The notes under the pieces were generated by a model. The model saw only the letters and a program-made list of their open reading frames with translations. It was not told where the DNA came from and did no database searches. Positions 12,026 through 59,269 of a DNA stretch of 64,000 nucleotides are shown here, in pieces. The stretch's first letter is position 1. Each line of letters starts with the position of its first letter. The stretch spans positions 2,108,001-2,172,000 of the forward strand of contig CDRNST010000180.1 in assembly GCA_977016875.1 (NCBI GenBank). Reading direction: 5' to 3'. The stretch comes from Pavona decussata. Lineage: Eukaryota. Position numbers and translations under genes: made by a program.

Positions 12026-15000
12026 CCGCTATTTGAGCTACGGCTCAAAATATTTGCCTTTTGGCTTATACAAACATTTGTTATTTTGTATTAGTAAATA
12101 CAAGCTGGATGCTAGTGTAAATTATACACATAACAACAAGAGTTGAGATAGTTTAACGTGTTCGTAAAAGCAACAGATCAGTTTTGTTACGCTCGCACAT
12201 GTTGGCAACATGTATTTACCGACCCAACTCGCAAACGTGTCGGTTGCCATGTCAAGGCGCCAAAACAGAATACGCCTTTTGAAGTTATTTTGTCTGACTC
12301 GTTCAAAAGAATGGTCGTATAATGTAAACAATAACGCCAGAGCGGATACGGGCACGCGTTTTTATGTAAACTAAATGTGACTCATGATGTTTGTCAGTGA
12401 AAGCTATATTTTAAACTTAGTTCTCTCCACATATATACTCAAGAACATAACTTAGTTGCCACCCAAAATGCTTGCTATGTACATATCTCGATATCCTACG
12501 TTGCACATCCAAATCTATAATTTGAACTCGGGCAATAGTGTCCTTGACCTTGTGCTAAAACCAGTTATCACGAAGGCTTTCGACGTAAACAGCGCCTTCT
12601 TTTGTTGCTTCCGAATATATAATTTTGGCCTATTCATCTACAAAAGTAGGCGTACTGCTCAAAGAGGTGTTTTATTAATAGCTGAACTATTATGCTGCCC
12701 CCTGGAGAGAGAAGGAAAAGTTTATCAAACTCAAGATTGACAGACCGAGGTTAACAGATAGGAAAACATTTCATTCTTAAAATTGAAATTTTGTAAAGAC
12801 GTTTGGATCATGGAAGTATTTACATGTAACGCATTGTCTAATTAAACGTAGTTTAACGTTTATTCTTTAATTCAATTTTACGTATTTTGATTAAGTAGGT
12901 GATTGATTTAAGAGGCATTTTATCTATCGATCAATAGTTGAATTAAAAGTCGCACCCCGCTGCGTAAGGCTTCACCCAACCACAAACTTCATGCTTAAAT
13001 TTAGTAGTCTGTAAGATTTGTGACTGGTCGGAGAAATACATACTACATAGAAGTGAAATGAAAGGAAATGTTGTTTTATAAAAAAACATCCTTTCTACAG
13101 ATGAAATTGAAACTAGCACTTAAAAATTTAATGGTGCCTGCATTTCGGAAAATCAAACTTCAAAAGAGATTTATGCAAGGGCCCTCGAGTGTTTTGAATA
13201 TCATAGTCATTCCATGTTGATCGATGATGACTCTGATAGTGATTTTTCCCTGGGGCGTGTCATTACACCAGCTTTTCTACAAAACACGTCTCTTTTGTAG
13301 CTTGTTGTTCTGTTAATCAGAACCGGAAATCCATAATTGTAAAGTAAAGAGTAACTGTTTAGAACACAGCATTTGTCTCATGTCCTTCAAGTGACCGTTT
13401 ACACAGTGAAATGACTTACGTGCCGTCGAAAGCGGCTTATTTCTCGGCGTTTAGAGAACAGATGCGACGTTTTGCTTCACTGCGTGCCAAATACACGCAA
13501 AAGAAACCTTGGAGGTTTAAGCCTTCGTTAAGACATTTGTACGCTTCGCATGGCTTTGAATTTTTGCAAGGATTGCCGTAAAATCACTAAAATGTCATGG
13601 GGAGTGCGGTTTATTAAAACATATGTACACGAAAGCAAAGTGTTAAAAATTCTTACGCGAGGTTGTGGTCTCTGTTCAAACGGTTCAAAAAACAATAACA
13701 AAAGAGTAAGACGAAGTAAAACCACAAAACTGCTGTAATTAAAAATCTAGCCACGCAATCGAGGAATTTTTTTCCAGTGTAGGGTGCAGCTGCTTCAAGG
13801 TTATCAACAAAACGCTTAAAATATTTTTTGGAAGATTGCACTATTTCAAAGGAGCTAATCGAAAGAGTCTGACGGAAAGAATTTAGGGTTGCGGTTATCT
13901 ATTGGTCGTCTCTTAAAGGATCAGTGATTTTTAATATTGACTGATGGTATTCCTAAAAGTTGTTTTGACTCCGTTTTAATTTTAGAAGGACTTTGTTCGA
14001 GTAACACTTTTTTGTAAAAGCACTCTAAACGGGCATCACTTAATGTACAATTTCATTTGGGGTGTATTTTCCTTTCCGTTTCACAAAAACCTCACATCCG
14101 TTGATGTCAAGTTTTTTCGTTGCCTTTTAAATGAAATATCAAATTGAACTGCTTAATGAAAAAGTGATGTAATGAATTATTCGGGAGTAAAGTGAACATC
14201 TGGTGGACTTCACAGTTCTGGTCGTTCGTGCGTGATGTAATGGGTAAGGAACAAACTTCACCCGTGCTGAACCTTCAGCCATTTTATATCTTTGATTTAT
14301 GATTTACACACATTCACTTCTGAGGTCAACATCAATTGACGTATATTTACAGCCAAGATATGTTATTATCATTATCATTATTATTTTATTATTGTTATAG
14401 AGATTCTCAGGAGTGTGTATAAAAATATCATACAGAACAAAAAAAATAAACGAAAAAAAAGTTATAATCCTAGTCAAAAACCTCGTGTAATGCGTTTCTA
14501 GCATTTCAGAAGTGTGTGAATAAAATTCCAAAAACCAACCCGTGGCCATTCAAAGGAAAACCGTGGAGTAGAAAGCTGTCGAGTAGTACTTCACGAATAA
14601 TGCTGCTTTTTTTAAAGGAAATCACGATGAATTTACAGCGCTGAACTTGCGTGCACATCAGAAATACTAAGTAGTAAAATTAGATGGTCGCACTCGGCAG
14701 TGCCACGTTTAGGCGGCGAGTGAAAGAACAAGAAAGGATGTAAACAAAAACTCAAGGGCTTCTCAAAGCGCTTTTGTTCTTAGAGACTATATCCATGTTT
14801 CATGCTCTTTCAGGACACCTGCATAGCTGCCAAATCCAAGTACCTCATCGATCTTGGCCAACCGACGCATGGCGACGGGTTACCACGCCATTGTTCTTGC
14901 TACAATGCCAAGCGACAGTGACTAATGACAACCGTGCCTTCGTTTCAAAGACGACTAGCAAAGACAACATGACAGCCTAAATGAAAAGAAATGATGGAAG

Positions 15001-15566
15001 ATCTAATAAAGAAAATTTTAAATTTCACACTGAATGACATTTTTACAACAGAAGCGGACCGAAGTCTCCCATAGCATATCATTTGCTTGAATGATCTTGA
15101 TGCTTGTGTGAGCTCGTGCTTCGGTGACACTTGTATATACTTTGTCCGAGCTGAAGGTAACTCAGCATAAGTCCTCAACAAAAGGTATTAATCTTCTTTA
15201 AACACTTTTACAGCCGCATTTTGCCTTTCAAGCCGTTAATATGCTATTTCCTTTTGGTTGGCCCGATCGTTTTGTTCTTTTGTAAGGTTTTTGTTTCGGG
15301 GTGAGATTTTTATCAGATGGCCACTTCATCGTGAAATGAAATCCAAATTAACCAAAATACAGACGATTTTATCTTCCTAGCGAGCTAGCAAATGGCGTCT
15401 GTTTGTTTTGCAGTAGTTAAACACACTCATTTCTGTCGAAATATTGCATAGTAGATGATATTATAACTTTTCAAAGCGTCACACATTGTTGGGGCACACC
15501 ATGTTCATGTTGAACACACACATGTAGTTCTTGTTAGATTAATCTGAAACTGTTTTACTTTAAGCA

Positions 15567-15991
15567 TTAAAGCGATAAATAGTTAGGAAAGTATTGAGGT
15601 GTAGGACGTTGAACAAAAATGTCCGGGTTTTGTTGGTAAGTTGGGGCGCTGTCACGAACAGAGCGCTGGAAACCTTGATGAAAACTTGGGTTGAAATGAC
15701 CGCCATTGGATTCATTCACTCCTTGCTTGCGACTGGACTCTTTAAGATCTCTCTTCCACTTCATTCGTCGATTTTGAAACCATATTTTTATCTGTGTCTC
15801 TGTAAGATCCAAGTTGGATGCTATTTCAATTCGTCGTGTTCTTGTCAAATATTTGCTAAAGTGAAACTCCTTCTCCAATTCAACTAGTTGTCGCTGCGTA
15901 AATGTGAACCTCTTCTTGTTGTTTGGAATGCTTTCTCGTTTTTTCTCCACGGTTGCGGTCTCCTCTTTTTCTGATCCATGAGATACAGTAA
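15567..15991 (-). CDS. Anthox6: Anterior Hox (PG1-like) Anthox6/HoxA copy 1, exon 2 (homeobox)
   Basis: Homeodomain [60 protein letters not shown]. Acceptor ttttcttcacatcaacAG is phase-compatible with exon 1. Stop TAA at 15569-15567. The joined CDS is 259 aa. Confidence 0.92.
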
Positions 15992-18539
15992 CTGTTGATG
16001 TGAAGAAAACGAAAAAAAGGTTTAACGATAGGAAAACTAGCTCTTTTAAAAGCCTATTCTTTGTTAAACCATATGTTAAGCTTGAAATACAACTCAGGTC
16101 GAGGTCTCGTTCATTTTGAAATCATTGATGCATCAAAGTCACATTTTTACCTACTTCGCAGCTTAAAGCTCGTTCAGCTAGTCAGGAATATCTTTAATCG
16201 AATGGTTTAAGCAGCGATTTTTAGCAGCGATTTTTCTGTGCATGTGGTTTATATTTTGTGTTTTCTTTTAGTTACTGTGCAAGGAAGGACAGGAAAGTAT
16301 GCATGGCCACGCCAGGGGATGATATTTTGCATTCAGTGGAGCCACTATGTTTAAAGATGAATGTAAACTGTTTCGGATGTGGTCGATAAGAGTAAAGATA
16401 ACCTCTTCTCTGATCATTCATATGAAGCGATAAAGATCTCTGAAAAACTAAGCGATTTCTCAACGCCATGTTAAAAGTACTTGAAGAAGAGATTATGGGA
16501 AGTCCAACAGCTCTTTGTCATTTGATGCATGATGTTTAATTTAACAATGATGTGCTACCGAATCCATTCTAGAGCCCGAAAAGTATTCTGCGTATATCTC
16601 TTCGACGGCTCATTCGGTTTATAGTTAGCACTATAGCTGAGTCGCTTTCTGTAGTAAGTTGTCGTACACAACTTTAGATTGAACGCTTCAAAGATGACCT
16701 TGATAGGCATGGCCCCTTTGTTTGCTGTGTTATTCCTGTCTGTGACACGAAATAGAAAGAACGCTTAGAGAGCACTATTTTTGACGATTAAATGTGTTTC
16801 CTTTCTTCCACTTGTCCTCTGTAAATCAGTTCAACTCATACGATTTATTTCTCACACTGTTGCAAATTTTGTTGTCACATCCGTTTGTGAATGTTTACTG
16901 TCATGGTTAGATATGGTTAGAAATTCTGAATACATAAAAGGATTGAATAATCTCGCTGATAGTCCTCTTTCAGTATTTCAGGGATTTGGACAGCTCTTCG
17001 AGTCTATCTGATATTATCAGTACTGGATTTGAAGTTGCATTAATGAAATTTTCCTAACTTAGGCTAAATACTTGTCCGCGTTTATCAAATTGTTTACGAG
17101 CTTGGCAAGGCCGAACTTATTTGTTGGTTTACAGACTATGTACATTGTAAATTTTACAGTTTCTTTAGCAATGTTTTGAACTTTATGGTCAATTTGAACT
17201 ACTTTTGAACTCCTCTATAAAAGAGGTTCGTATTCAATAAAATTCCCTAGTCATTCAAGAAGCGAATTTTCTTTGACAACATTCAGTTTTGAAAGAAATC
17301 TTTTGTACAAGAACAGACCATGATGATCAATGCAAATGTTTCACTCGAAAGCTTTCCTCTTAAATGTTGCCTTAGGACACTTCAACTGAGATAGCAAAAT
17401 TAATAGGATCACCTTGAGCAAGTCGGGTCATTCTCCAAATATTGATGGCCAGTCTGAGTGTTTAATAATTGAATTGCATTGAAATCAATTAAAAAGATTT
17501 TCACAAGTGCCTGAAAAATGTCAGCCGCACAAACGAAAATAAATTACCAATTTACAGGTTTTAATCGAAAAATTCGGTAAAGTAGTTCCTGTTTTTTGGT
17601 AAGTGCATAAATAAACAAGCTTACTAGCAGGTGTGAGGAACAAACTAAAAGAAAAGATTATGAATTTTTTGCTGTGGTTATTTTTGGTGTTGAGTTTGGC
17701 TCACTTGAGCGTTAAGATTATAAGCGATGTTAAGTTGTGATCTTGGCAATCGATTAGCGGTAACCGCAGTTAGAATTTGATTAACTAAATGTACTGTGGA
17801 ATAAAACTCACGGGTTACCTTGATTTATGAATTATATTGTGTCTTAGCTTTCGCCATAAGGCCATAAAATACCCGCACTAACTGACCTTCACCCTAAGGG
17901 AATTCAACTCATCGAATTCACTCTAGCGAGCAATTCTTGTTTTCAAAGACTACCTGAAGGTACTCGATCCCTACATTGAGGCCCCTAATACTAAAAATGC
18001 CACGCTTGTATGAAAATATAACTACACAGTCTCGTTACAACGTGGTTTATTTCAACGCTTTTTACGCAATATTTTCGCGTCTACTTCAATGGAAATACAA
18101 TCAGTTATTGCCGGGCAATAACTGACTTGATGTTCAATAGTCCATGTAGTATTGACGAGAAGCGGTATCCATTTTCACGCTAACTAAAAGAAATGGTTTT
18201 CGATAAACGGGCAGTAGAAAGTGTTACAAGAAATGTCTGAACTCGACACAATAAAGTTTGATCACAGCAATTCACTGCTTTAAATATTTGAAACCATTCG
18301 CTAAAGGGTTTTAACGAAGGCGTGATTACACGCACACTCAGGATAATTCACTGCAAAGCGTTTAACAAACATAGTCGAAAACCGCACGCTCGTAACTAAA
18401 CATACGAACTACTGTATAATAATATAAAAAATGTTATCAGGATTGTAAACTAGATTGATAGCTTGGGTAATAGGATTGTAACTGACATTAGATACAGCTA
18501 TATTCAAGTAATTTCACTTCAAGTAACTTAATTTGTTAC

Positions 18540-18894
18540 CTTTTCTTTTAGTGAACATCCACCGATAGTTTGCGGTCTGCCAGCGTTTTTTTTCCGCATT
18601 CTGAACTCTCACACTTTCATTTGAAGGCGGCTGCGATTGTGAAGAAGAAAACGGAAGAGATGATGGTGAAATCGGGAGCTCTCGGCTTGCCACTGGCATC
18701 GATGAAGCACCTAACGGAGCAGAGAAAGGAAGGAAGCTTTGAGGCGGCGAGTGAATGTTTATGTTCGGGTGCCGAGCGCTGTTTGGAGGATGTCGTAGAG
18801 GCATCGTCCGTCCAAAATCTACGCCATGGTAGTGTGGTGAAATAGCCGCTGTCAAGTGTGGTGCTGGCATCCTATAGCGCCAATCGTCCATCAT
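18540..18894 (-). CDS. Anthox6: Anthox6/HoxA copy 1, exon 1
   Basis: Starts MMDDW; Pro/Ser-rich N-terminus; hexapeptide-like NYRWM just before the phase-1 donor AAAG|GTAACA. Confidence 0.88.
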
Positions 18895-18961
18895 TTTGTT
18901 AGAGTCTAACCGTACCGGCTTCCAACTGCTGTTGCTAACTGACCAAGCGTACGACCGACAA

Positions 18962-19010
18962 TCAGTGAAAACGTACGTCGATGTGGGTGACTTATAAACC
19001 GGGGCGGGTT
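18962..19010 (-). promoter_or_regulatory. Core promoter of Anthox6 copy 1 (GC box + TATA-like + Inr-like)
   Basis: The minus strand reads CCCGCCCC-GG-TTTATAAG, with TTTCACT about 20-25 nt downstream, ~100 bp above the ATG. The GC box and TATA-like motif are conserved in all three copies. Confidence 0.55.
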
Positions 19011-20635
19011 CTACGTGCTGTGGTCAATTTATCGATTAATAGGATCAACGCACAAGTTATTTTACCAAAGCATGGTGCGCTCCGATGGAAGAGCTAAGAT
19101 CAGTATTTCGCTCCGCTTGGCAAAGACCAGAGGAAAATCTCCTAGGGTTTCAATTAGAGACCTCGCTTTCTCCTTTTCTCGGAAGTCTCTGAGCGAATCT
19201 GCAAGAGTCGCGCTGGGGGCCTTCAAAGATACAATGCGACGCACGCTTCAAAAATAATTAAAATTAAATCGTATTAACTTAATCAGCGAATGCTGAACAA
19301 TAGCTCGGAGTCAATCGTGTCTTTTTTTTCCAGATGGAAGGACAAAACGTTCCCACATATTTTAATATTAGCCTCCGGCAAATGGAATCTATTATTGAGA
19401 CCTTATGCCTCACTTTAGCAAAGTCATCTTATGTGGCCAGAAGCTTTGTATTTTTGATCGAAAAATAATTATAACAACAATTGAAGTTTCGACTTTTGTA
19501 ACCATCATTTTGTGTTGTCTTCTGACCCATACAAGAAGTAATGATTATTATTCCGTTATCTAAACTGCGAGTGAAGACGGAAGACCGCCTAGGAATAACG
19601 AGCCATTTTGCCAACTGTACCTTTGTGAGAAAAGGAGAAAACAAAGTCGCATATCACTTGTTTGGTATAAGGATACAGCGGGAATTCTTTTATAGTCAAC
19701 AGTCACCAGTTCAAAATATTGCGAAAATTTATAAATCTCTTTAATTAACATTATTTTTCACTTCAAAATAAATAACGTTCACCTTCGTGGCTCGAACTTT
19801 CGGTGAAATACCACTTAAAGTTTAATATATTCCGGAACTTTTAAGTTTTTTTTTTTTTCAAATCCGGCGTTTTTGTGATCTGTAGTTTTCAACTGCGTTA
19901 CGTGGCGATCGCGAAGGGTCTTCACGTTTCATCTAGCTTTCTGGTACAAGTTGTGTACAAACTGACTTACTCAAGCAGAAAGTTTGGTTTCAGTCGCGTC
20001 ATTTTGTGGCTGTTTAATGTGCAGATTACACGGGCTCCGTTGGATGGCGAAACTTCAGCGAAGCATAGACAAAAAAATTGAATAGATTTCACATTTTAAT
20101 AGGATGTTTCGTGCTGAGAGGTACAATAAGGCTCTTGCCGCATTGAGGCCACACAAACCTTAAAAGTTTTAATCGCGGTCTCAGTGAATGGCTTGCTACT
20201 ACTTGTATGAGCATGAACTGGTTTATATTGATTTCGCAAATACACCGTTGTGATTCCGTATAAATTGTTCAACGTGACTACATGTGTCCATATAGGATCT
20301 AAAAATAGAGATCACGAGCTGCCGTTTTAAGGCGTGTGTGGGCTGGACGTTTTGGCATCTAAAAAATCATCTGGGAGACACCAAAAGAATCACCTCAAAA
20401 TTGCTTGACATGGAATAAATTGCTTAGTTCTCGAAATATTTTATATTCTTTTTGTTTCTATTCATGATAGGTAATGCGTGTACCACGCTGTTACGTTTTT
20501 ATAAAGCGACCTCAGCAGTAAAGCATGATCGGGTAAATGACAAGAGAACTTTGAGGTTGTCATTGCAACGAGTTATTTTTACAGTAAAACATGTTTTCAA
20601 AATGAAAACTGTTGTCGTTTTTCTTAAAATTTTAC

Positions 20636-26691: not shown

Positions 26692-26903
26692 GCTCATTTT
26701 AGACTGTGTTCTTAGAGACCTGACCTTCGGGAAGAGGTGCTGGAGTTTGCTTGGTCTTGTTTACTGCTTTTCATTTGAAAATGACTAGTTAGCATAAGAA
26801 CAACCTATTTTTGTATATGAAAAGTCTTGAGGTTCAAAGTTAACTCCAGCCTCGCCTCTAACCAAAGGCTAGGTCACTAAGCACACAACTGTAAAATGGG
26901 TAA
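26692..26903. mobile_element. MITE (palindromic)
   Basis: Imperfect long TIRs CATTTTAGACTGTGTTCTTAGAGACCTGACCTT / AAGGCTAGGTCACTAAGCACACAACTGTAAAATG. Confidence 0.65.
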
Positions 26904-28396
26904 TTTTTTTTAACTTCAACATCCCAGCTCAACGCTGCTAACTTTTTATTAGCCTCCGTTGATTGAATTGTTCGTACTTTTTATCTTATAGTCGTCAAGG
27001 CAACCATGATATTTTGTGAGCACTTGGCGCAACGTCAGCACATTCCCGTTGTTATTTTCGTAAAGTTTTCGTGTGGTTTCACAGATGCGCTACGGATCTT
27101 CTTTATCCCAAGTGAGATTATCCATGTCACATTGGGTTCTATTAGTTTGGTATAAATTGTATTTTAGTTATGTAACACGTTTTAAAACATGATCCGTTTT
27201 CGTTGCAGAATCTGACCATCAACCAACAATTGTTTAAGAGAAAACAATATTGTCTGCAGATGTGAAGGTTTAATGCTCAAATATTTTAATGCAAAATTAA
27301 GAAATAAAATATTGTACTGTAAAATCGCGTTTCTGTTGTCTAACGTAGATCCTCGAATAAGCTCCTCCCTAAGATACCTGCCTTCTCTTGAATGATCGTC
27401 CCTCCCCTTCTTATCTTTTTGAGGGAAGAGGGGCTACTACTGCCGCACCAAAGGTTGAGTATTCTCAGTTTTCACTCACGTGACTTCCACCTTGCCAGTC
27501 GTTGTTGTTCGCCATCTCTATGTCCCCTGCAATTTTGCATAATTCCATGAATTACTAAAAAAGGCATAAAGACAAGTGTAAAGGGGGTGGTTCTTTACAT
27601 TGTTTAAGATTGTGGAGGCATGTCCAATTTTCGTCTCCATCCATTATAAAAAGATTACTTTAAAACGTCAAGATAAACTACTTTGGAGTTTTGATCAAAT
27701 ACTGTTATGTTACTACACTGACATCGCGTGATCTAATTTTATGCACACTTTTGTTTACTGAAGGTGAAATTCAGCCAAGACAGTATTGTACTCTGGGAGA
27801 AAATAAAGCCTAAAACTCTAGCTAGCAGGGAAACTACTAATGATTAAATATCAACCTTGTTACTTTGGTATGTGGGTCAATTTTTTTTTCTCTGTTTTGA
27901 CTGTCAATCTTACAGTCGATGATGGCGTCGGACACAAACGTCACTGTGACGGAGAGTTAGTCGGGTGGAAACCCAAAACAATTGAAAACAGACACTGTAC
28001 AACCACGAAATGTTGCAGTGGCACGGATATGTAATTCTTATTTTAACCGACAAGACATAACATTTTTGTTCGAAGTGTCTTTTAGAAACGTAGTGTCCAT
28101 AGACGTTGCTGATAACATTTTGTAAGTGTGTCAAACTATTTAAAGAGGATTTTTAATATTCATGAATGCAATTTTACCATTTTTCGTTATATTTTTATCT
28201 CTTTGTTAAATATCTTTTATTTGATGAGAAAAATATGACAGACAATAAAACAAAGATTGCTCCATTGTGGTTTTTCGATAAATTTTTAATGAGAAATATT
28301 AGTCGACATTAATTCAACTTCAGAGAGCATAAACATAGTTTGGTGACAATCTCAACCTCAAATCAATTCAGTTTGCAATAAGTCTCATTAAAACGA

Positions 28397-32132: not shown

Positions 32133-32466
32133 CTTTTCTCTTAGTAAACATCCACCGATAGTTTGCGGTCTGCCAGGGTTTTTTCTCCGCATTCTGAACT
32201 CTCACACTTTCATTTGAACGGGGCTGCGATTGTGAAGAAGAAAACGGAGGAGATGATGGTGAAATCGGGAGCTCTCGGCTTGCCAGTGGCATCGATGAAG
32301 CACCTAACGGAGCAGAGAAAGGAAGAAAGCTTTGACGCGGCGAGGAGAGGTTGATGTTCGGATGTCGTAGAGGCATCGTCCGTCCAAAATCTAGGCCATG
32401 GCAGTGTGGTGGAACAGCTGCTGTCAAGTGTGGAGCTGGCATCCGATAGCACCAATCGTCCATCAT
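32133..32466 (-). CDS. Anthox6: Anthox6/HoxA copy 2, exon 1
   Basis: MMDDW start, NYRWM hexapeptide-like motif, phase-1 donor AAAG|GTAGCA; in-frame 21-nt deletion relative to the other copies. Confidence 0.88.
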
Positions 32467-32534
32467 TTTGTTAGAGTCTCGCCTTACCGGCGTCCAACTG
32501 CTGTCGCTAACTGATCAAGCGCAAGACTTACGAA

Positions 32535-32583
32535 CAGTGGAAACGAGCGGCGATGAGGGTGACTTATAAACCCGGGGCGGGTT
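32535..32583 (-). promoter_or_regulatory. Core promoter of Anthox6 copy 2
   Basis: CCCGCCCC-GGG-TTTATAAG on the minus strand, same position as in copy 1. Confidence 0.5.
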
Positions 32584-35336
32584 CTGTGGCTGGTAGTCAA
32601 TGTATCGATGAATAGGAGCGACTCGAATCAACGTACAAGTTATGTTATTACACGAAAGCACGGTGCACTCCCATGGAAGAGCGTAGATGAGGTAGATCAG
32701 TATTCCGCTGCGTTTGGCGAAGAGCGGACGAAAATCTCCTGGGGTTTCAATTAGAGACGTCGTTTTCTACTTGTCTAGGAAGTGTCTGAGTGAATCTGTG
32801 AGAGTCACGCTGGGGTTTCCAAAGGTACAATGCGACACACGCTCCAATCAAAAATAATTAAAATTAAATCGTATTAAGTTAATCGGCGAACGCTGAACAA
32901 TAGCTCGGACTCAATCGTGTCTTTTTCTTTCAGATGGAAGGACAAAACGGCCCACATATTTGTAAAACTTGCCTCGGGCAAATGGAATCCATTATTGCGA
33001 CCTCATGCCTTATTTCAAGACAATCATCATTTGTCTTATTCTGTGGCGAGGAGCTGTGTTTCTGTTTGAAGAATAACTATAACAACAATTCAAGTTTCGA
33101 CTTTTGTAACCATAATTCTGTGTTGTCTTCTGACCCATGCAGGAAGTAATGATTATCTTTCCGTTATCTAAACTGCGAGTGAAGACGGAAGACCGCCTAG
33201 GAACAACGAGCCATTTTTCCAAAAAAAGGAGAAAACAAAGTCGGATATCACTTGTTTGGTATAAGGATACAGCGGGAATTCTTTTATAATCATCAGTCAT
33301 CAGTTCAAAATATTGCAAAAATTTATAAATCTCCGTAATTCACATTGTATTTCACTTCAAAATAAAGAACGTTCACCTTCGTGGTTCGAACTTTCGGTGA
33401 TATACCACTACTGAAGCTAAATATATTCCGGAAGGTTTTTTTTTTTCCAAATCCGGCGTTTTTATCATCCGTAGTTTGTCATCTGTCTTAAGTCGCGATG
33501 GCAAAGGTTCTTGACATTCCATCTAGCTTTCTGGTACAAATTGTGTACAAACTGACTTACTCAAGCAGAAAGTGCGGTTTTAATCGCATTGTGAGCGTCA
33601 TTTTTGCGGCTGTTTAATTTGTGCAGATTACACGGTCTCCGTCAGATGGCGAAACTTCAGTGAACCATAAATAAAACATTTCAATAGATTTCACATTTTA
33701 ATAAGAAGTTGTTTCGTGCTGAGAGGTACAATAAGGCCCCTCTTCGTATTGACGGCATACAAGCCTTAAAAGTTTCAATCACGTTCTCAACAAAATGGCT
33801 TGCCGCTATAATCCGCCAATGCTTTTGTACCTGGTTTATTTTGATAACGCAAATACACCGTTGTGATTCCGTATAAAGTGTTCTAAAAATAGAGATCACG
33901 AGCTGCCGTTTGTAGGCGTGTGTGGGCTGGACGTTTTGGCATCTAAAAAATCATCTGGAAGACACCAAAAGAATCACCTCAAAATCGCTAGATATGGTGT
34001 AGAATTGTTCAATTCCCAAAATTCTCTAGTGTTTTTATTCGTTCTATTAAATAGCTTAATATTAAGATTTCCCTGTTCATATAAATTGACGTAAGCAAGT
34101 AGTATGAATCAAGTGAAAACGAAGGTTAAAAATATATGCCTGAGCAACAAAACAAGAAAAAATTGTTGATTGAGCTTGTCGCTGCATCGAGCTGGTTTTA
34201 CCGCGAAACAATATTAAACTCTTGTACCACCACTTTTGTTGTTTGAAGAAATAGATTATAATAAGAACTAGGCCTTCGAATTCACATTATTAGTCAATGT
34301 TTCAACCTTCGTTCCCTTGGAATAGAACTAAGTCAAGATTCGAACACAAAAAACGTCTTCATCCATTCCGGGCGTATACCTACAAGCCAATTTCTAAAAT
34401 TTTTACAATTTAGGAGCACAGGTCAAACTTTACCACAAAAAAGGTTATTGTGTGCCTCAGTCGCCATTGTTTTTTCTCATAAGGTGCTATTGTAGTTATG
34501 TTTGAAGACAGGTGTAAACTTTCTTTACTACAGCACATTTGGTTACTTCAATTTTTATTTCATTTATTATAAGTTTCTTGTTGATGTTAACACAAACTTG
34601 GGTTCAGTCTCTTTCAGGTAATATCCTTCAAAATTGACTTCCTCGAGAAAGAAGAATTAATTTAAATGAAAAAAAACCTAAGGGTGTAATTTATCCTTTC
34701 GACTGAGGCGACTACTACTCAATATATGCCTTTCCGATCGTTTGATAAATTTTATCACAAATTGCTATAAAACTCAAGTGTTGGTAAATTTTGGAAACTA
34801 CCGGCGAGGAACAGTTAAGAGAAAGCTTCTACGGTCCACTGAAACGAATCAAAAGTACATTATTTTAACTAATGTAAATTGCACCCACTACACCTTCACA
34901 CAATTTCTTCGTTCTTAAGTAAAATCTACAGCACGCATGCTCAGCAAAGTGTAACGTCACAAAACCTCAACACTGGAACCCAGTTCACTCGAACAGTCAC
35001 ATTACACAGCTCTGCGGAATGGCCACGGCGAAGAGATATAATTAAATTGAACTCCGTCATATAATAATTTCATTGGCTTTTCTTCGATCAACTCTATCCG
35101 ACTCGTTTGAAGGCAGCTTTGGGTTGTGTGTTCCCTGAGTTCGTATAACCGCTATAAACTGAAGGCTGATTAATTTTGTATTAATTATACAAAACAGGTT
35201 AAACTTCCCAATACGCTCCACTTTTTTTCTCTCTTTATGTACAAGATGTATTTAGGAAACCTCAGGAAATGTGAACAAACGATGAAAATTAATTGAAAAG
35301 AAGTTGCAAAATAGTGTCCAAAAGTCCAATATTAAA

Positions 35337-35513
35337 AATAGGCAATTTCCGAGTTGTTGTGAACCTCATTATAAAAGCGAGGCTAAGTGTAAAGCTTTTC
35401 ATATGAAAATTAGTTTTGTTTGCACGAGTTTGCAGACTAATTTTCATAATAACAACTTTGCACTTAGTCTCGCTTTCATAGTGAGGCCTAAAACAACTCG
35501 AAAATGGCCTATT
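35337..35513. mobile_element. Palindromic MITE
   Basis: AATAGGCAATTTCCGAGTTGTT ... AACAACTCGAAAATGGCCTATT with inverted symmetry along nearly the whole length. Confidence 0.75.
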
Positions 35514-35708
35514 CTACAATGAGCCACGCCATTCCATGCCGATTATTACTTGGGATTATTTCGGGGTCAGCGTGAAAAAAACAATCAAACAAAAAAGAGA
35601 CTATTTCGGTGTCGGTTCATTTCAGGGTCAATCTGGGGACCATTTCGCGCTTGGGGATCATTTCAGGGGCCGTAAAACCCTAACAAGTCCGGGACAGCTG
35701 CCCACCAG

Positions 35709-35947
35709 GCCCCAGTTGTTCAAAGGCCAGATAACTTTATCCTGTGGATAAGTCACTATCCGACTTTTTGAATCTGTGCAAAGATTTCAATATTTCCTCT
35801 TGTACAAGCTTTTATGCACACTCTAACCACATTTAAGTTTGGGAGTGTACGAAAACCTTGGACAACGTTTAACGTGAAGTATATTTTAGACCCTGAACAG
35901 TGCCTTATCCAGCGGATAAAGTTATCCGGCCTTTGAACAACTGGGGC
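35709..35947. mobile_element. MITE with 3-bp CAG target duplication (PIF/Harbinger-like)
   Basis: TIRs GCCCCAGTTGTTCAAAGGCCAGATAACTTTATCC / GGATAAAGTTATCCGGCCTTTGAACAACTGGGGC, flanked by CAG on both sides. Confidence 0.85.
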
Positions 35948-35957
35948 CAGGCCACCA

Positions 35958-36070
35958 AAATCTCGTTCCCAGAGGCTGCGTTCCTTTTGGTCATCACCAA
36001 GGAAGCAAGACATCCGAGCCTGCACATGGCCGTTGGCCTAAAACGCTTGAGGGCCCTGGGGACGAGATTG
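35958..36070. mobile_element. Short MITE
   Basis: TIRs AATCTCGTTCCCAGAG / CCCTGGGGACGAGATT; only the right end survives in copy 3 (~43372-43388). Confidence 0.65.
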
Positions 36071-36312
36071 TGGCTCCTACTGCCCAGTGATATGGCTGTG
36101 CGCATGCGTAAGGGACCGTCCATTACGCAGAGCTGTATAGTGTGACAAATGCATTTCAAATAGTGTATTTAAAGAACCCTAGAATGAGAGTGTGAACGAT
36201 CCACCTCGAGTCGATACGTAAATCATTCAGATTGTAGTTGGTTTGCTCCCTTGGCAAAATCCGCGTTTGGATGGACTAAAAGATGGCGACCTACCAGAGG
36301 ATACTCCGCGTA

Positions 36313-36570
36313 TTGATATTTTCAAACGGAAACTTAAGACTCTCCTTTTTAAGAGAGCATATCTCGAGTAGTTTTTTAGAATAACGTTTATACGATTTTT
36401 AATTTTAACAGAATTAGTTAGCATAATATTTATGATCTAATTTTTTTATGTATGATAGTTTACTTTTTAATACTACATATATTGTCTAATTGATACTATT
36501 TGTAAAGCGCATTTCAAAACTTTAGTTGAATTTGCGCTATAGAAATTATTACTATTATTATTATTATTAT
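36313..36570 (+). mobile_element. 3' end of an L2/CR1-like LINE with (TTA)n tail
   Basis: Encodes IDIFKRKLKTLLFKRAYLE*, followed by a 3' UTR and (TTA)n. The empty site is visible in copy 3 (~43950) and copy 1 (~23175). Possible GTA target duplication. Confidence 0.8.
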
Positions 36571-38268
36571 GTAAGTTTTGGTAGGGGTGTGTGCCATCCG
36601 ATTCTCCAAACTCTGAGCCTATTTTAGAACAAAACATGTCATTTTTCCACGCTCGTCTCAGATCTGGGCCAGGTTGCAAAAACCATTTTAAGATGAGTGG
36701 GAGTTGTCTGCAGTCGTTCCTTGTCTTCCAAGGGATGTTCCCGCGTTCTTTTTGTGTTCTCTATCCTCAGTAAATCAGGTTTAGCCCATTGATCCAATAT
36801 AGCGCCCGGCAAAATCCTCCCGAACAAAGAAAGCAGAACCGGGCTAGCTGGTTTCTAAAACTCATGTTCATTTTTTATCACGTCCAATAAATCTTTTGTT
36901 TTGTCTTTTTCGTCATTTTCTCCCTTTTTCGTTTGAAGATAAAAAAAGACAAATATGTGTATGGGCTCTACAAAAATTTTATTAAGGTCCTAAACAAAAT
37001 AGCCCGTTCGATTGTCATGTACATGTAAGCACGGAACTGGACAAAATTCCCAGATTTCGTATTGAATTTCCTTTTAGCCCGAGCGAAAACTTTCTGCAGA
37101 TGTGAGGGTTTAATGCTCAAATATTTTAATGCAAAATTAAAGAATAAAATGTTGTACTGTAAAATCGTAACGTGTTTCTGTTGTCTAACATAAATCCTCG
37201 AACAAGCTCCTTCCTAAGATACATGCCCCTCTTGAGTGATCGTCCCCTCCCCTTCTTATCTTTTTGAGGGAAGAGGGGTTACTACTGTGACACCAAAGGT
37301 TGAGTATGAGTATTCTCGGTTTTCACTCACGTGACTTCCACATTGACAATCGTTGTTGTCCGCCATCTCTACGTTTCCTGCAATTTTGCACAATTGCATA
37401 AATTAAAAAAAAGCATAAAGTCAAGTGTAAAGGGGGTGGTTCTTTGCATTGTTTGAGATTGTGGAGGCATGTCCAATCTTCCTCTCCTACTATCATAAAC
37501 AGATTACTTTCAAACGCCAAGATAAACTACTTTAGAGTTTTTATCAAATACTGTTATGTTACTACACACTGACATTGCCTGATCTAATTCCTGCACATTT
37601 TTGTTTACTGAAGATGGAATTCAGTCAAGACAGTTTTGTACTCTGGGAGAAAATAAAGCTTGATACTCTAGCTAGCAGGGAATTGAAACTACTTATGAGT
37701 AAATAGCATCCTTGTTACTTTGGTATGTGGGTCAAGTTGTTTCTTTCTCTGTTTTCGTGATGACGGTCAATCTTACAGTCGATGATCGCGTCGGACAAAG
37801 ACATCACTGTGACGGGGAGTTGTTCGGGTGGAAACCAAAACAATTGAAAACAGACACTGTACAACCACCTTTATGTTGCAGTGGCACGGATTTTTAATTC
37901 TTATTTTAACCGACAAGACACAACATTTTTGTTCGAAGTGTCTTTTGGAAATGTAGTGTCCATAGACGTTGCTGATAACATTTTGTAAGTATGTCAAACT
38001 ACTTAAAGAGGATTTTTAATATTCATGAATGCAATTTTACCATTTTTCGTTATATTTTTATCTCTTTGTTTATTAAATATCTTTTATTTGGTGAGAAAAA
38101 TATGACAGACAATAAAACAAAGATTGCTCCATTGTGGTTTTTCGATAAATTTTTAATGAGAAATATAAGTCGATATTAATTCAACTTGGATGAGTATCAA
38201 CATTGTTTGGTGACAATCTCTGCTTAACCTCAAATCAATTCAGTTTGCAATAATTCTCATTAAAACGA

Positions 38269-38328
38269 TCCCATGTTGTACAGCAGTTGAGATTCCTGGT
38301 TTTCACCTAGGTGGCCAAAGGTTCGCCT
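38269..38328 (+). pseudogene. Truncated tRNA-Glu(TTC) pseudogene (duplicate of 28397)
   Basis: TCCCATGTTGTACAGCAGTTGAGATTCCTGGTTTTCACCTAGGTGGCC. Confidence 0.7.
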
Positions 38329-39089
38329 GGCTCAAATCCAAGTACATGATGGACCTTGGCCAAGTGACGCATGGCGAGGGGCTGCCACGCCATTGTCGTT
38401 GTGCTATGAATGCCAAGCGACACGGTGACTAGTGACAACTGTGCCTTCGTTTCAAAGAGGACTGGGAAAACAGTCAGATTGACTAGACAGAGACAACATG
38501 ACAGCCTAAATGAAAAGAAATGATGACGACCTAATAAAAACTTTCATTTTGCATTAACTGACATTTTCATAACTGAAATGACTAAAGTCTCCCGGTGCAT
38601 ATCATTTGCTTGAATGATCTTGATGCTTGTGTGCGTTCGTGCTTCAATGCGATCAATGTATACTTTGAACCGAAGGTAACTCAATATAAGCCCACAAAAA
38701 AAGGTATTTATCTTCTTTAAACACTTTTACAGCCACACTTTGCCTTTGAAGCCGTTAATATGCTATTTCCTCTTGCTTGGCCCGATCGTTTTGTTCTTTT
38801 GTACAGTTGTTTTTTGGGTGAGATTTTTATCAGATGGCCACATCAACTTGAAATGAAATCCAATTAACCAATATACAGACGTTTTTATCTTGCTAGCATT
38901 GTGAGCTAGAAAATTGCGTCTCCTTCAGTTTAGCATTAGTAACTAACACACTCATTTCAGTCGTAATATGATATAGTAGAAGATATTATAACTTTTCAAA
39001 ATGTTACACATTCTTGATACACCATGTTCATGTTGACTATACACATGTAGTTCTTGTTACATTGATCTGAAACTGTTTCACTTTAAGCA

Positions 39090-39505
39090 TTAAAGCGATA
39101 AATAGTTAGGAAAGTATTGAGGTGTAGGACGTTGAACAAAAATGTCTAGGTTTTGTTGATAAGTTGGGGCGCTGTGAAGAATAGGGCGGTGGAAACCTTG
39201 ATGAAAACTTGGGTTAAAATGACCGCCATTGGATTCGTTCAGTCCTTGCTTGCGATTGGACTCTTTGAGATCTCTCTTCCACTTCATCCGTCGATTTTGA
39301 AACCATATCTTAATCTGTGTTTCTGTAAGATCCAAGTTTGATGCTATTTCAATTCGTCGTGTTTTTGTCAAATATTTGCTAAAATGAAACTCCTTCTCCA
39401 ATTCAACTAGTTGTCGCTGGGTAAATGTGAACCTCTTCTTGTTGTTTAGAATGTTTTCTGGTTTTTTCGCCGCGGTTGTTTCCTCTTTTTCTGATCCAGT
39501 AGACA
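39090..39505 (-). CDS. Anthox6: Anthox6/HoxA copy 3, exon 2 (homeobox)
   Basis: Intact homeodomain with R28K. CAGCAG acceptor (exon start 39508 or 39505). The joined CDS is 256-257 aa. Confidence 0.92.
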
Positions 39506-42042
39506 CTGCTGACGTGAAGATAATGAAAAACGGTTAAAAGACAAAACTAGCTCTTTTGAAAAGCTATGCATTATTTAAACCATATTTTAAGGTTAATACG
39601 ATTTGATCGAGATGGCGTCCATTTTGAAATCATTGATGCATCAAACTAAACCACATAGTTAACTAATATTTGTGAAACGTTCAATTATAATTTACTTCAC
39701 CTAAAGCTCGTTCGGCTAATCACGAATACCCTTTATATCGAATGGTGTAAGCAACGATTTTAATGTGTTTTATTTTTCGTCTTTTCTTTTAACTACTGTG
39801 CAAGGAAAGACAAGAAATTATAGCCACGCCAGGGGATGATATTTTGCATTCAGTAAGCCGCAATGTTTAAAGATGAATGTAAACTGTTTCGGATGTGGTC
39901 GATAAGAGTAAAGATAACCTCTTCTCTGACCATTCATCACAAGCGATAAAGATCTTTGAAAACTAAGCGATTTCTCAAAGCCATGTTGAATGTACTTGAA
40001 GAAGAGAATATGGGAAGTCCAACCGAGCTCTTTCTTATTTGATGCCACGTTTAATTTAACAATGATGGGCTACCGAATCCATTCTGGAGTCGGAAAAGTA
40101 TTCTGTATATATCTCTACAATTTTTCATTTGATCTTAGTATTGGAATTATAGTTGAGTCGCTTTCTGTAGCTAGTTGTGGTCAACAACTGTGCGTAGATT
40201 GAACGCTTCGAAGATTACCTTGGCTTCTTTGTTTTTCTGTGTTATTCCTGTCTGTGACACAAAGAACGCTTAGGGAGCTCTACTTTTGATGATTGAAACT
40301 TTTTTCCACTTTGTCCTTTTAAAATCAGATCAACTCATACCGAATTTATTTACACTGTTGCAAATTTTTTTGTTACATCCCTCTATGAATATTTACTCTC
40401 GTGGTTAGAGCGGATTAGCTTAAATTCTGAGTAGTAAAAGAACTTGTATAGTCTCGTCGATCGTGTTCTATCAGCATTTCAAGATTTTAGAAAGACAGTT
40501 TTCGATTCTATCATATTAAACTGGGTTTGAAGTTGCATTCATGAAAAACTTTTTTGTCCTAACGTACGTTAAATACTTGCCAGCGTTTATCACTTTTGCT
40601 CCCGGAGCAAAGCTCGGGCCGAGCTTGACAAGGCCGAACTCATTTGTTGCTTTATAACTTAGGTACGTTGTAAATTTTAAGACTTTATAATCAATTAGAA
40701 CCTTCTGAACTTCCCTGGAAAATAGTATAGCATTCAGTAAAATTCCCTAGTCATTCAAGAAGCAAATTTTCTTTCATCATCGTTCAGGTTTTGAAAGAGA
40801 TCTGTGTAAAAGAACAGACCACCAATGCGAATTGTTGATGGCAAATAAAGACGAAGTTAAATCGAAATTTACTCTCTTGAATAACGCCATAGCGTCCGGG
40901 ACGTTCAAACCGAGATCGCAAAATTAACAGCGTCGTCACCTTGAGCAAACCAGGCTAATTTCACGAGTTTAATGAGTACATTGCATTGAAATCAATGAAA
41001 ATGATTTTCACAAGTGTCAGAAAAATGTCAGCCGCACAAACGAAAATAAATTACCAATTTACAGATTTTAATCGAAAAATTCGGTAAAGTAGTTCCTGTT
41101 CTTCGGCAAGTGAATATTTAAATAAACAAGCTTACTAGCAGAGGTGATGAACAAACTAAAGAGAAGATGATGAATTTTTTTGCGGCGGTTATCTTTGGTG
41201 TTGAGTTTGGCTCACTTGAGCGATAAGATTATAAGTGATGTTAACTTGTGATCTTGACAATCGATTAGCGGTAACCACATTAGAATCTGATTAACAAAAG
41301 GTACTGTGGAATAAAGCTCACAGTTTATTTTGATTTATGGATTTAGCTTTCGAAATAAGATCATAAAATACCGCACTTACTGACCTTCACGCTAAGAGAA
41401 TTCAATTCATTCTAGCGAGCAACTCTTGTTTTCCCACAACGCCGGGAAACTAAAAATGCCACGCTTATTTGAAAATATAACTATCTAGTTTTCTTTAATA
41501 GAAGGTGGTTTACTTCAACGCTTTTTAACTCATCGTGTTCATGTCCGTTTCAATAGAAATACAACAGTTATTGCCGGGAAATAACTGACTTGATGCTCAA
41601 TAGTCCATGCAGTGTTGAGGCGGTATCCATTTTCAAGCTGACTAAAAGAAATGGTTAGTCTCTAGTAAACGAGCAGGTGAAACTGTTAAAAATGTCCGAA
41701 CTTGAAAACATAAAGATTTATCGCAGTCTTTTGCCGCTTCCGAAGAACTGGCTATCGTTGTTTGAAACTATTCGTTTGTTTTAAAATATTCGGTAATGGT
41801 TCAACAAAGATATCCTAAAGATTTTATCCTGCTGTCGCAAGTAACGAAGCGTTTAACGTCTAAGAACTACAGGAAAAATCGCACACTCGAACTAATAAAA
41901 AAACATAGAAACTATTCTGTAATAATATAAAAAATGTTATCAGGATTGTAAACTAGATTGATAGCTTGGGTAATAGGATTGTACCTGACATTAGATATAG
42001 TTATATTCAAGTAATTTCAGTTCAGTCAACCGACTTTAATAC

Positions 42043-42397
42043 CTTTTCTTTTAGTGAACATCCACCGATAGTTTGCGGTCTGCCAGCGTTTTTTCTCCGC
42101 ATTCTGAGCTCTCACACTTTCATTTGAACGGGGCTGCGATTGTGAAGAAGAAAACGGAGGAGATGATGGTGAAATTGGGAGCTCTCGGCTTGCCACTGGT
42201 ATCGGTGAAGCACCTAACGGAGCAGAGAAAGGAAGAAAGCTTTGACGCGGCGAGGAGAGATTCATGTTCGGATGTCGAGCGCTGTTTGGAGGATGTCGTA
42301 GAGGCATCGTCCGTCCAAAATCTAGGCCATGGTAGTGTGGTGGAACGGCTGCTGTCAGGTGTGGACTTGGCATCCTATAGCACCAATCGTCCATCAT
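42043..42397 (-). CDS. Anthox6: Anthox6/HoxA copy 3, exon 1
   Basis: MMDDW ATG at 42397, NYRWM motif, phase-1 donor AAAG|GTATTA. Confidence 0.88.
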
Positions 42398-42465
42398 TTT
42401 GTTAGAGTCTAACCGTACTGGCTTCCAACTGCTGTTGCTAACTGACCAAGCGCAAAACTGACGAA

Positions 42466-42514
42466 CAGTGGAAACGAACGGCGATGAGGGTGACCTATAA
42501 ACCCGGGGCGGGTT
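42466..42514 (-). promoter_or_regulatory. Core promoter of Anthox6 copy 3
   Basis: CCCGCCCC-GGG-TTTATAGG on the minus strand, homologous to copies 1 and 2. Confidence 0.5.
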
Positions 42515-43465
42515 CTGTGGCTGGTAGTCAATGTATCGATGAATAGGAGCGACTCGAATCAACGTAGACGTTATGTTATTGTACGAAAGCACGGTGCACT
42601 CTGATGGTAAAGCGAAGATCAGTATTCCTTTGCGCTTGGCGAAGAGAGGAAGAAAATCTCCTAGGGTTTCAATTAGAGACGTCGTTTTCTATTTGTCGAG
42701 GAAGTGTCTGAGTGAATCTGTGAGGGTCACGCTGGGGTTTCCAAAGATACAATGCGACACACGCTCCAATCAAAAATAATTAAAATTAAATCGTATTAAC
42801 TCAACCAGCGAACACTGAACAATAGCTCGGACTCAATCGTGTCTCTTTTCCTCCAGATGGAAGGACAAAACGTTCCCACATATTTTTAATACTTGCCTCG
42901 GGCAAATGGAATCCATTATTGAGACCTCATGTCTTATTTCAAGAGAGTCATCATTTGTCTTCTGTGGCGAAGAGCTGTGTTTCTGTTCGAAGAATAACTA
43001 TAACAACAATTCAAGTTTCGACTTTTGTAACCTTAATTCTGTGTTGTCTTGTGACCCGTACAAGTAGTGATGAGTATCTTTTCGTTATCTAAGCTGCGAG
43101 TGAAGACAGAAGACCGCCTAGAAACAACGAGCCATTTTTTCCAAGAAAAGGAGAAAACAATGTCGGATATCACTTGTTTGGTATAAGGCTACAGCGGGAA
43201 TTCTTTTATAATCATCAGCCACCAGTTCAATATAAACAAACAAACAAACAAAAAAGAGACTATTTCGGTGTCGGTTCATTTCAGGGTCAATTTGGGGACC
43301 ATATCGCGGCTGGGGATCATTTCGGGGGCCGTACTAACCTTACAAGTCTGTTGGGCTAAAACGTGCGCGGGCCCTGGGGACGAGATTGTGGCTGCCACTG
43401 CCTGGTGATATGGCTGTGCGCATGCGTAAGTGACTGTTGATAACGCGGAGCCGTATAGTGTGACC

Positions 43466-43760
43466 AATTAACAAATCGACGGCAGTTTTCTATGGTCTAT
43501 ACTCTTATAGGCGAGTGGTTTCACTGCCAAGTTTTGGACATTTTATGGCGTCATTTTATGGTCTATAAGAGTATAGACCATAGAAAACTGCCGTCGATTT
43601 GTTTTTTACAATAACATGAAAAAAAATACGAGCGGAATTGGCTATTTTTTCGTTGAGAAAGCGCACGCGTTACATCTGACGTCAATTTCTTTGTCTGTAC
43701 TCTTATAGACAATAGCTACAAGCCAATCAGCGCGCGGGAATTTGGACAGTTATTGTAAAA
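43466..43760. mobile_element. Non-autonomous double-inverted-repeat element specific to copy 3
   Basis: A 40-bp perfect inverted repeat (ACAAATCGACGGCAGTTTTCTATGGTCTATACTCTTATAG) is followed by a second pair, TTTTACAATAAC / GTTATTGTAAAA. The empty site is at ~36146 in copy 2. Confidence 0.8.
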
Positions 43761-44378
43761 TGCATCTTAAATAGTTTATTTAAAGAACCCTAGAATGAGA
43801 GTGTGAACGATCCACCTCGATACGTAAATCATTCAGATTGTATTAAATCCAAGATTGGTTTGCTCCTAAATGAAAAGAAAATTATAATTTCCTTGGCAAA
43901 ATCCGCGCTTGGATGGACTAAAAGATGGCGACCTATCAGAGGATACTCCGCGTACGTTTTGGTAGGGGTGTGTGCCATCCGATTCTCCAAACTCTGAGCC
44001 TATTTTAGAACAAAACTTGTCATTTTTCCACGCTCGTTTCAGATCTGGGCCAGGTTGCACAAAGCATTTTAAGATGAGTGGGAGTTGTCTGCAGTCGTTC
44101 CTTGTCTTACAAAGGATGTTCCCGTGTTCTTTTTGTGTTCTCTATCGTCAGTAAATCAGGTTTTGCCCATTGATCCAATATAGCGTCCGGCAAAATCCCC
44201 CCGAGCACAGAGAGCAGTTGCAGAAACTCCCACTTATCTAAAGATGATTTATACAACTCGGCCTAGCTAGTATCTAAGATTCATGTTCATTTTTTATCAC
44301 GTCCAGTAAATCTTTTGTTTTGTCTCTTTCGTCGCTTTCTCCCTTTTTCGTTTGAAGATAAAGAAGACAAATATGTGT

Positions 44379-44500
44379 TATATACCATAATTAATAATTA
44401 TTCTAGGTGTATACAGGGCCCCTCAGGATAACAGCCCCGTAGCTGATTGGGCCACCCTGTCTAAATAAATTTCACTTACTTACTTACTTACTTACTTACT
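44379..44500 (+). mobile_element. Short 3' end of a non-LTR retroelement with (CTTA)n tail
   Basis: Insertion absent from copy 2 (~36960); AATAAA followed by a (CTTA)n tail. Confidence 0.6.
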
Positions 44501-45087
44501 ATAGGCTCCTTGATGAAATAGCTCGTTTGATTGACATGTACATGTAAGCACGGAACTGGACAAAATTCCCTTTTAGCCCGAGCGAAAACTTTCTGCACGT
44601 CATTGCAAACTACTATTTAAAATAGTTTATTCGCGAGTGGAGACGGATATGTTGAGATTTCAGTCCCTGAAACCGGCTAAAAATTACAGTTGGCCCGACA
44701 ATTCAGCACCTTGGCTGAAATCCTGTATGTAATCGCCCCCTTAGAAATGGATTGGATGACACATGATTTGCCTCCTCAGTGAAAGCGTCTAAGAATTGAA
44801 ATATTAGAATCGAAACGGTTGTCACTGAGAACTAAACCATGATGGAGAAACCCGCTGTCTGTTCAGTGGAAACAAAACACCGAAAACGTTCGAAATATAT
44901 CCACTTACTGGACTCTTATACAAGCGTTTAAAGCCAAAAATTAAAAAATTAAGGCGTTAAAATTGAAGAGAAGTTGGTGAAAAAACGGTAAGGAAAAGAA
45001 AAAAGATGATTGAAGTGAACAAATAAGGTTTGAAATAAATGCAAAAATCAGTGTTTTTCTCCTCACTGCGACCACGCTTTGAAAAAG

Positions 45088-45204
45088 AGCCTGCGCAATG
45101 GGAGGGGCCCGTCGCGCGTCATTCGCGCTCCACGTTCGCCTGAAAAACGCCCCCCCCCCCCCCCCCAAAAAAAAAAAAAAAAAAAAAACCTGTTCTGCAG
45201 GCTA
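45088..45204. mobile_element. Short MITE-like element with C/A homopolymer runs
   Basis: Ends AGCCTGC ... GCAGGCT; GC-rich interior. Confidence 0.5.
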
Positions 45205-59212: not shown

Positions 59213-59269
59213 GATGATGTGGCGTCCCTGCCTTTGTGATCTAAATGCGTGCAAATGAAAGTGCGGAGC

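Follow-up and report, generated by a model that had tools for sequence, protein, structure and literature searches.

Three two-exon homeobox genes beside Evx

The DNA examined was a window of 64,000 nucleotides (nt) from Pavona decussata (positions 2,108,001-2,172,000 of contig CDRNST010000180.1, assembly GCA_977016875.1), which holds three tandem Hox-type genes, assigned below to Anthox6/HoxA, beside the homeobox gene Evx. A six-frame scan of this window detected four homeoboxes, all on the minus strand: three near-identical ones of Hox type, at about 15.8, 29.4 and 39.3 kb, and one of Evx type at about 55.4 kb. The two coding exons of each Hox gene (c1, c2 and c3 in the following) were located from the listing of open reading frames and by tblastn with full-length coral orthologues, and their boundaries were then read; single, unjoined exons served as database queries, and the protein lengths given are sums of exon lengths. 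In the case of c1, exon 1 (18894-18540) starts with MMDDWRYR and ends in YRWM (18567-18556) followed by FTKRK, and exon 2 (15991-15567) holds the homeodomain in full (15923-15744) as well as the stop codon, which gives a protein of 259 amino acids (aa) and an intron of 2548 nt. Exon 1 of c2 (32466-32133) carries a 21-nt in-frame deletion (7 aa) relative to c1 and c3, and together with exon 2 (29631-29216, homeodomain at 29572-29393) it encodes 249 aa across an intron of 2501 nt. Finally, c3 is composed of exon 1 at 42397-42043 and exon 2 at 39505-39090 (homeodomain at 39446-39267), with 256 aa and an intron of 2537 nt. All three introns are of the GT-AG kind and of phase 1, with the donor G/GTA, the acceptor CAG/ and a split Val codon.

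The Pfam domain PF00046 (Homeodomain) was complete in each exon 2, with E-values of 4e-22 to 1e-21, and the Antp-class homeodomain of 60 aa with its helix 3 motif was present in all copies. Within homeodomain positions 3-58, one differing residue was found in each of c2 (Asp39 to Ala) and c3 (Arg28 to Lys), the former being common to a copy of another species (S2, assembly ERZ26692669) that is described below as its B/C-type copy. The end of exon 1 is AEKKRWQTANYRWMFTKRK, which contains a hexapeptide-type motif, YRWM; ANYRWMFTKRK closes exon 1 in the three copies, so placing this Trp-containing motif N-terminal to the homeodomain, and motifs of the same type are kept in coral, anemone and octocoral orthologues. 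By its sequence, YRWM would be a hexapeptide of the Pbx-interaction type. These models bear out the first-pass annotation, which had described three same-strand, two-exon genes of 259, about 249 and about 256 aa with matching splice phases and a YRWM hexapeptide-like motif. Furthermore, in genome-wide searches (602 Mb in 1180 contigs) each exon had exactly three matches, none of them outside the window. The stored products P0001, P0003 and P0004 from the same contig read exon 1 past the donor into the intron, with a TGA taken as Trp, and their C-termini are artefactual extensions.

Duplication units and their history

Self-BLAST of the window delimited three units on the minus strand. Unit A (14831-20462) comprises c1 with about 0.74 kb of flank on its 3′ side and about 1.6 kb on its 5′ side; it was 79.5% identical to unit B over 28461-34048 and 78.9% identical to unit C, and B (27253-33312) and C (37093-43234) were 89.4% identical to each other. 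In its full extent, unit B spans 27253-37097 (9.8 kb today), with inserted sequence at about 33312-36147 that is extra relative to C, and unit C spans 37093-44597 (7.5 kb), the ancestral upstream flank toward Evx being kept there. Unit A is the oldest copy, in which the ancestral downstream flank is kept. At the head-to-tail junction of B and C (37093-37097), sequence matching the stretch that ends at 44597, upstream of c3, meets sequence matching the stretch that starts at 27253, downstream of c2. Both parental flanks were thus identified, and all that they share at the join is CTGCA, a microhomology of 5 bp, which points to an event of the replication-slippage or end-joining type; recombination mediated by a long repeat was rejected for B/C because of this short shared sequence.

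The identity between A and B/C varied by segment, being 92-94% in the exons, 86-87% with few gaps in the 5′ flank (824 nt), 85% in the 3′ flank and 81-82%, with more than 300 gapped columns, in the intron, and that between B and C was about 92% in the 5′ flank and the intron alike. The conserved promoters and diverged introns described in the first-pass annotation therefore hold for A against B/C, with a modest contrast, and not for B against C. Moreover, the 0.8-kb 5′ flank of the three genes could be aligned to Acropora and the introns could not, which argues for constraint on the flank. Inside the introns, blocks at 16313-16487, 29956-30129 and 39830-40002, as well as at 17685-17784 and the paralogous places, showed an exon-like identity of 93-94% between the old paralogues, and the 3′ part of the c1 intron (16461-15991) was alignable to another coral genus; these blocks are candidate regulatory elements, judging from their conservation, and they had no match in Rfam. 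Two repeats lie in or near the units. One, dispersed and of about 300 bp (68-69% identity), is found at 28161-28444, 38024-38316 and 47916-48215, that is, downstream of c2 and c3 among other places, and is absent at the duplication join. The other, at 26701-26900, is of very high copy number, with summed contig depths of 500-23,000 in the four runs and many loose ends on both sides.

The order of events was established by comparison with other corals. Species S2, about 90-92% identical to the window, has two copies, one orthologous to A and one of B/C type; the downstream flank of the latter continues like that of B and its upstream flank like that of C, uninterrupted through the position of the join. 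A tree built from 4.9 kb of DNA, in which a contig of another individual or close taxon (L001, ERZ25073751) was included, had the topology ((A, S2_A), (S2_BC, (B, (C, L001_C)))) and a star on each of its branches; a triplication in a single event was rejected by it. The path lengths in this tree were 0.17-0.19 from A to B/C, 0.077 from B to C and 0.06-0.08 from the window species to S2. In the tree of exon-2 proteins, the five copies of the window species and S2 formed one clade (99/97), outside of which fell Acropora, Montipora, Porites, three further complex corals and the robust corals. In two Acropora assemblies, Evx is followed by 8 kb, a single Anthox6 and then a downstream flank collinear with 15.4-4.4 kb of the window, and in the coral ERZ25071802 a single copy is bordered by an Evx-side marker on one side and by that same downstream flank on the other; the outgroup flank corresponds to about 14.7-4.3 kb of the window. 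Since the outgroups have single copies with collinear flanks, one copy is the ancestral state. The first duplication is common to two or more species, and the second took place soon after their split.

Accordingly worded, the tandem triplication of the first-pass annotation stands as three head-to-tail copies and gives way, as an event, to two successive duplications. Its lineage-specific character stands in that the clade of the window species and S2 excludes the other sampled corals, with the qualification that the older step is also found in S2; the coral copy counts amount to one in the two Acropora assemblies and in ERZ25071802 and to two in S2. The history proposed is that an ancestral single Anthox6 (HoxA) gave rise to three head-to-tail paralogues via two local segmental duplications, unequal or of the microhomology type. 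In the first step, about 10 kb (the gene with its 3′ and 5′ flanks) would have been copied before the split from S2, producing copy A (c1) and the ancestor of B/C, and in the second step the B/C gene with its surroundings, about 7.5-10 kb, would have been duplicated shortly after that split, producing c2 and c3. Each copy carried along its proximal 5′ flank of about 0.8 kb. No large-scale gene conversion among the copies was seen in a sliding-window comparison. However short, one run of c1-type states was found in the homeobox exon of c3 (39331-39233), on a background that is of B type elsewhere, and it includes Asp39, Asp59 and a Ser gained by c1 after the species split. This tract of about 100 bp (39233-39331) is a possible short gene conversion from c1 to c3, the signal being suggestive only.

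Integrity, selection and expression of the copies

No stops, frameshifts or lost splice sites were found in c1, c2 or c3. The ratio of nonsynonymous to synonymous substitution rates (dN/dS), calculated according to Nei-Gojobori, was 0.36 for c1-c2, 0.33 for c1-c3 and 0.39 for c2-c3, and it ranged from 0.21 to 0.33 between each window copy and its S2 orthologue. In the youngest pair, c2-c3, there were 23 nonsynonymous changes on 579 sites versus 16 synonymous changes on 165 sites, well under the neutral ratio. As these values lie below 1, selection has acted on the copies. The earlier description of all three copies as intact is thereby sustained for their frames, splice sites and dN/dS, from which their retention as working genes may be predicted: all three would function as Hox transcription factors, binding DNA together with a Pbx partner. 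With regard to expression, contigs of a coral metatranscriptome were placed on exon 2 of c2 and the first bases of its 3′ untranslated region at 95-98% identity, with zero contigs in the intron, and in a presumed RNA run the 3′ flank of c2 (28270-29209) was covered more deeply than the intron. In Nematostella, anthox6 is expressed from the planula onward in the pharyngeal endoderm, where it marks a ring (PMC1779807), and both Anthox6 paralogues of Montipora capitata come on at settlement (bioRxiv 10.1101/2024.09.29.615694). By analogy, the likeliest fate of the copies would be that the ancestral expression was partitioned or shifted among them.

Taken together, the locus, at the Evx-proximal end of a scleractinian Hox cluster, is read as three intact Anthox6 paralogues beside Evx that arose by two successive local duplications, with a probability of about 0.85. 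Several points weigh against this reading. To begin with the copies themselves, dN/dS is higher between paralogues than between orthologues, which indicates relaxed constraint. Moreover, c2 has the 7-aa deletion in exon 1 and a codon CCC (32178-32176) that puts Pro in place of Arg in AEKKRWQT, just before the hexapeptide; this Arg is invariant in c1, in c3, in all orthologues out to octocorals and in the c2 of the other individual. The RNA contigs on exon 2 of c2 could derive from a paralogue or a related coral, and, for expression and splicing at the level of single copies, all four runs consisted of short Logan contigs with zero spliced joints; the same short contigs, free of joints, gave no local depth profile over the array. 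Furthermore, the older junction between A and B/C could not be located in the array. Finally, the best Nematostella match bears no database label 'Anthox6', and the name rests on clade composition, synteny and the literature.

A number of these points would also be expected if at least one copy, likeliest c2, were a young pseudogene or silent duplicate, its frame open through youth and the cluster not functionally growing. In favour of this alternative are the Arg-to-Pro change in the otherwise invariant AEKKRWQT together with the 21-nt deletion of c2, the paralogue dN/dS of 0.33-0.39 above the orthologue level, the fact that no copy-specific transcript evidence was obtained from the short-contig runs, and the report that two of the three Anthox6a paralogues of Montipora are undetectable at all stages (bioRxiv 10.1101/2024.09.29.615694). 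However, frames and splice sites have stayed intact despite a neutral divergence of about 8% for B/C and about 18% for A vs. B/C, there is a clear deficit of nonsynonymous changes, also in the c2-c3 pair, and no homeodomain has more than one internal replacement. In addition, the Arg-to-Pro change is absent from the c2 of the other individual, so that it may represent a damaging allele private to one individual or an error of sequencing, and the Anthox6 paralogues of Montipora are both expressed. The silent or decaying state of a copy is regarded as less likely than not, and as the most probable of the alternatives, and c2 is the copy most likely to be decaying or lost.

Gene class, Hox cluster and comparison with other anthozoans

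Searches with exon 1 and with a full-length orthologue retrieved proteins of 255-264 aa, most of them named 'homeobox protein ceh-13(-like)' at NCBI, from Acropora (several species), Montipora foliosa, Porites lobata, Pocillopora verrucosa and Oculina patagonica. The coral orthologues have a common N-terminus, MxDxWRYRMP, and an identical exon join, and one of them (P0008) derives from Logan contigs of transcript size, which indicates that the gene is spliced as modelled in a related coral. The top match in Nematostella was XP_001634252/EDO42189, with 46% identity at a length coverage of 98%, and the top medusozoan match was Cnox1-Pc of Podocoryna. In the homeodomain tree, the window copies and the coral orthologues were grouped with Nematostella XP_001634252, Actinia, the octocoral Dendronephthya and Podocoryna Cnox1-Pc (89/89), and the genome's remaining genes of Hox type fell outside this Anthox6/Cnox1 clade. 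The Anthox6 clade, the bilaterian Hox1 clade and the remaining Hox genes formed a polytomy. A clade of Anthox6 and medusozoan Cnox1, Cnox1-Pc included, has been described (PMC9825252), and the support for a relationship to Hox1 (PG1) was low there too. Thus, the class Anthox6/HoxA given by the first-pass annotation is upheld by the homeodomain phylogeny, and of its 'PG1-like' expansion the Anthox6 part stands, the PG1 part ending in the polytomy.

The claimed position beside Evx was likewise found, the three genes being downstream of Evx. The homeodomain exon of Evx is located at 55825-55049 on the minus strand, like the Hox copies, with the homeodomain at 55540-55343 and the frame running to the stop, and another conserved exon region of Evx is located at about 58900-59660. 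Along the contig, the three Anthox6 copies (2.124-2.150 Mb) are followed by Evx (2.163 Mb) and then by further Hox genes, which were classified by diagnostic residues and the homeodomain tree: an Anthox7/8-like gene at 2.202 Mb and an Anthox1a-like gene at 2.222 Mb, both on the minus strand, and an Anthox6a-like gene at 2.242 Mb on the plus strand. This order matches anthox6-Evx-anthox8/7 in Nematostella (PMC1779807) and Anthox6-Eve-Anthox7/8-Anthox1a in Acropora, as given in the part of PMC4083563 that summarises DuBuc et al. 2012, and it fits the ancestral adjacency Anthox6-Evx-Anthox7/8 stated in PMC10588955. Homeoboxes of Rough-like and Mnx/HlxB9-like type are found at about 2.513 and 2.522 Mb, beyond that end of the Hox genes which is opposite to the Anthox6 array; since the Rough- and Mnx-like genes of Nematostella are on the Anthox6 side (PMC1779807), a rearrangement is indicated. 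At the locus of the best Nematostella match, no Evx was present within 10 kb, and a RhoBTB-like gene, its neighbour on the downstream side, is absent from the window, so that microsynteny with Nematostella is not directly demonstrable.

The three genes are supported as being of Anthox6/HoxA type by the composition of their clade, the position beside Evx and the order of the cluster. The assignment to Anthox6a/HoxB or Anthox7/8 instead would have in its favour that the homeodomain alone separates the cnidarian Hox classes weakly and that no sequence labelled 'Anthox6' entered the comparison. It is nevertheless very improbable: separate Anthox7/8-like, Anthox1a-like and Anthox6a-like genes are found on the same contig, outside the clade of the window copies; this clade takes in Cnox1-Pc, put by PMC9825252 in a clade sister to Anthox6; and the genes show the Anthox6 signature of lying directly beside Evx in the same orientation, with two exons and an unsplit homeodomain (PMC1779807, PMC10588955).

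The array was also recovered in other assemblies. An ENA assembly of the same individual made with a second assembler (ERZ25073805, contig of 852 kb) was 99.98% identical over 5567-39632 with the same spacing, being probably built from the same reads and hence independent in method only, and contig L001, at 98.3-98.7% identity, ran unbroken from c3 through the unit boundary to exon 1 of c2. An artefact by which haplotypes or mis-joined contigs were placed in tandem, to which the unitig-like contigs with no depth profile and the probable origin of the second assembly lend some room, is the least probable alternative and was rejected, given a copy divergence far beyond allelic difference (10.6% for B/C, about 20% for A), the passage of L001 across c3, junction and c2 at about 98.5%, the A and BC pair in the same order in the more distant S2, the clean join with microhomology and zero extra haplotig copies elsewhere in the 602 Mb searched with the exons. 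Upstream of c3, positions 1-5230 of L001 are only 80-94% identical to 43348-48573 of the window and rearranged, which points to structural variation between the array and Evx.

A tandem duplication of Anthox6 beside Evx is known from Montipora capitata, in which McAnthox6.1 and McAnthox6.2 adjoin McEvx in a compact cluster that is common to scleractinians (bioRxiv 10.1101/2024.09.29.615694). The orientation and the compact arrangement are the same in the window; however, three copies are present here instead of two, and the history, junction and selection were traced here, whereas expression is known in Montipora. The present expansion is most likely independent of that of Montipora, as far as can be told from the trees, because its clade excludes Montipora and Acropora and because Acropora is single-copy. 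Nematostella vectensis resembles the window in having Anthox6 beside Evx in the same orientation, with two exons and an uninterrupted homeodomain, and differs in that its Anthox6 is single and Anthox7/8a/8b were expanded instead (PMC1779807), as the first-pass annotation had correctly stated; tandem duplication is a known growth mode of anthozoan Hox clusters, with the Nematostella Anthox7/8 set as an example (PMC1779807). Gene order and linkage are also those of Acropora digitifera, according to the part of PMC4083563 that summarises DuBuc et al. 2012, but Acropora has one Anthox6, and the interval from Evx to the flank is enlarged by two extra units in the window. In coral genomes at large, tandem duplication is pervasive and the genes concerned are often missed in short-read assemblies (PMC10236652); compared with such duplicates, a developmental patterning gene inside a Hox cluster is a less usual target. 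The novelty hinted at in the first-pass annotation is accordingly limited, since two Anthox6 paralogues beside Evx had already been reported in Montipora capitata (bioRxiv 10.1101/2024.09.29.615694); new here are the third copy, the apparently independent origin, the dated two-step history and the preserved join.

A broader reading, which is tentative and held at less than even odds, is that Anthox6 has been recurrently duplicated in stony corals (in Montipora and in this lineage) and that the three copies are kept by selection, with occasional conversion and with an ancestral role, oral or pharyngeal and at the settlement stage, that was divided or extended among them. If so, a cnidarian Hox cluster would still be gaining working genes in the manner that has been put forward for how the cluster arose. 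According to the common view, Hox clusters were assembled by tandem duplication, but most of those that can be observed are old and static. The array offers a dated, stepwise example in a cnidarian cluster, in which the copy number rises from one through two to three as the species compared become closer and the younger join is preserved to base level, and it provides a natural experiment on the fate of a Hox gene, and of the regulatory DNA proximal to it, soon after duplication. For annotators, it implies that coral Hox genes may be undercounted where the counts come from short-read assemblies or single models. The general picture of Hox evolution is unchanged by it, as Anthox6 duplicates were already known in Montipora.

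Two minor features were found outside the units. Between Evx and the Anthox6 array, a tandem repeat of 106 bp is located at 54035-54415 (3.6 copies, 84% matches), and in another coral (L019, 679-2110, 75-80% identity), whose Anthox6 is single, copies of this repeat in both orientations were detected upstream of that gene, which suggests an element conserved across genera at this position. Near the other end of the window, Rfam gave a tRNA match at 10900-10972 (minus strand, 40.6 bits), where ARAGORN makes no call; the match may reflect a degenerate tRNA gene or else a repeat of tRNA origin.

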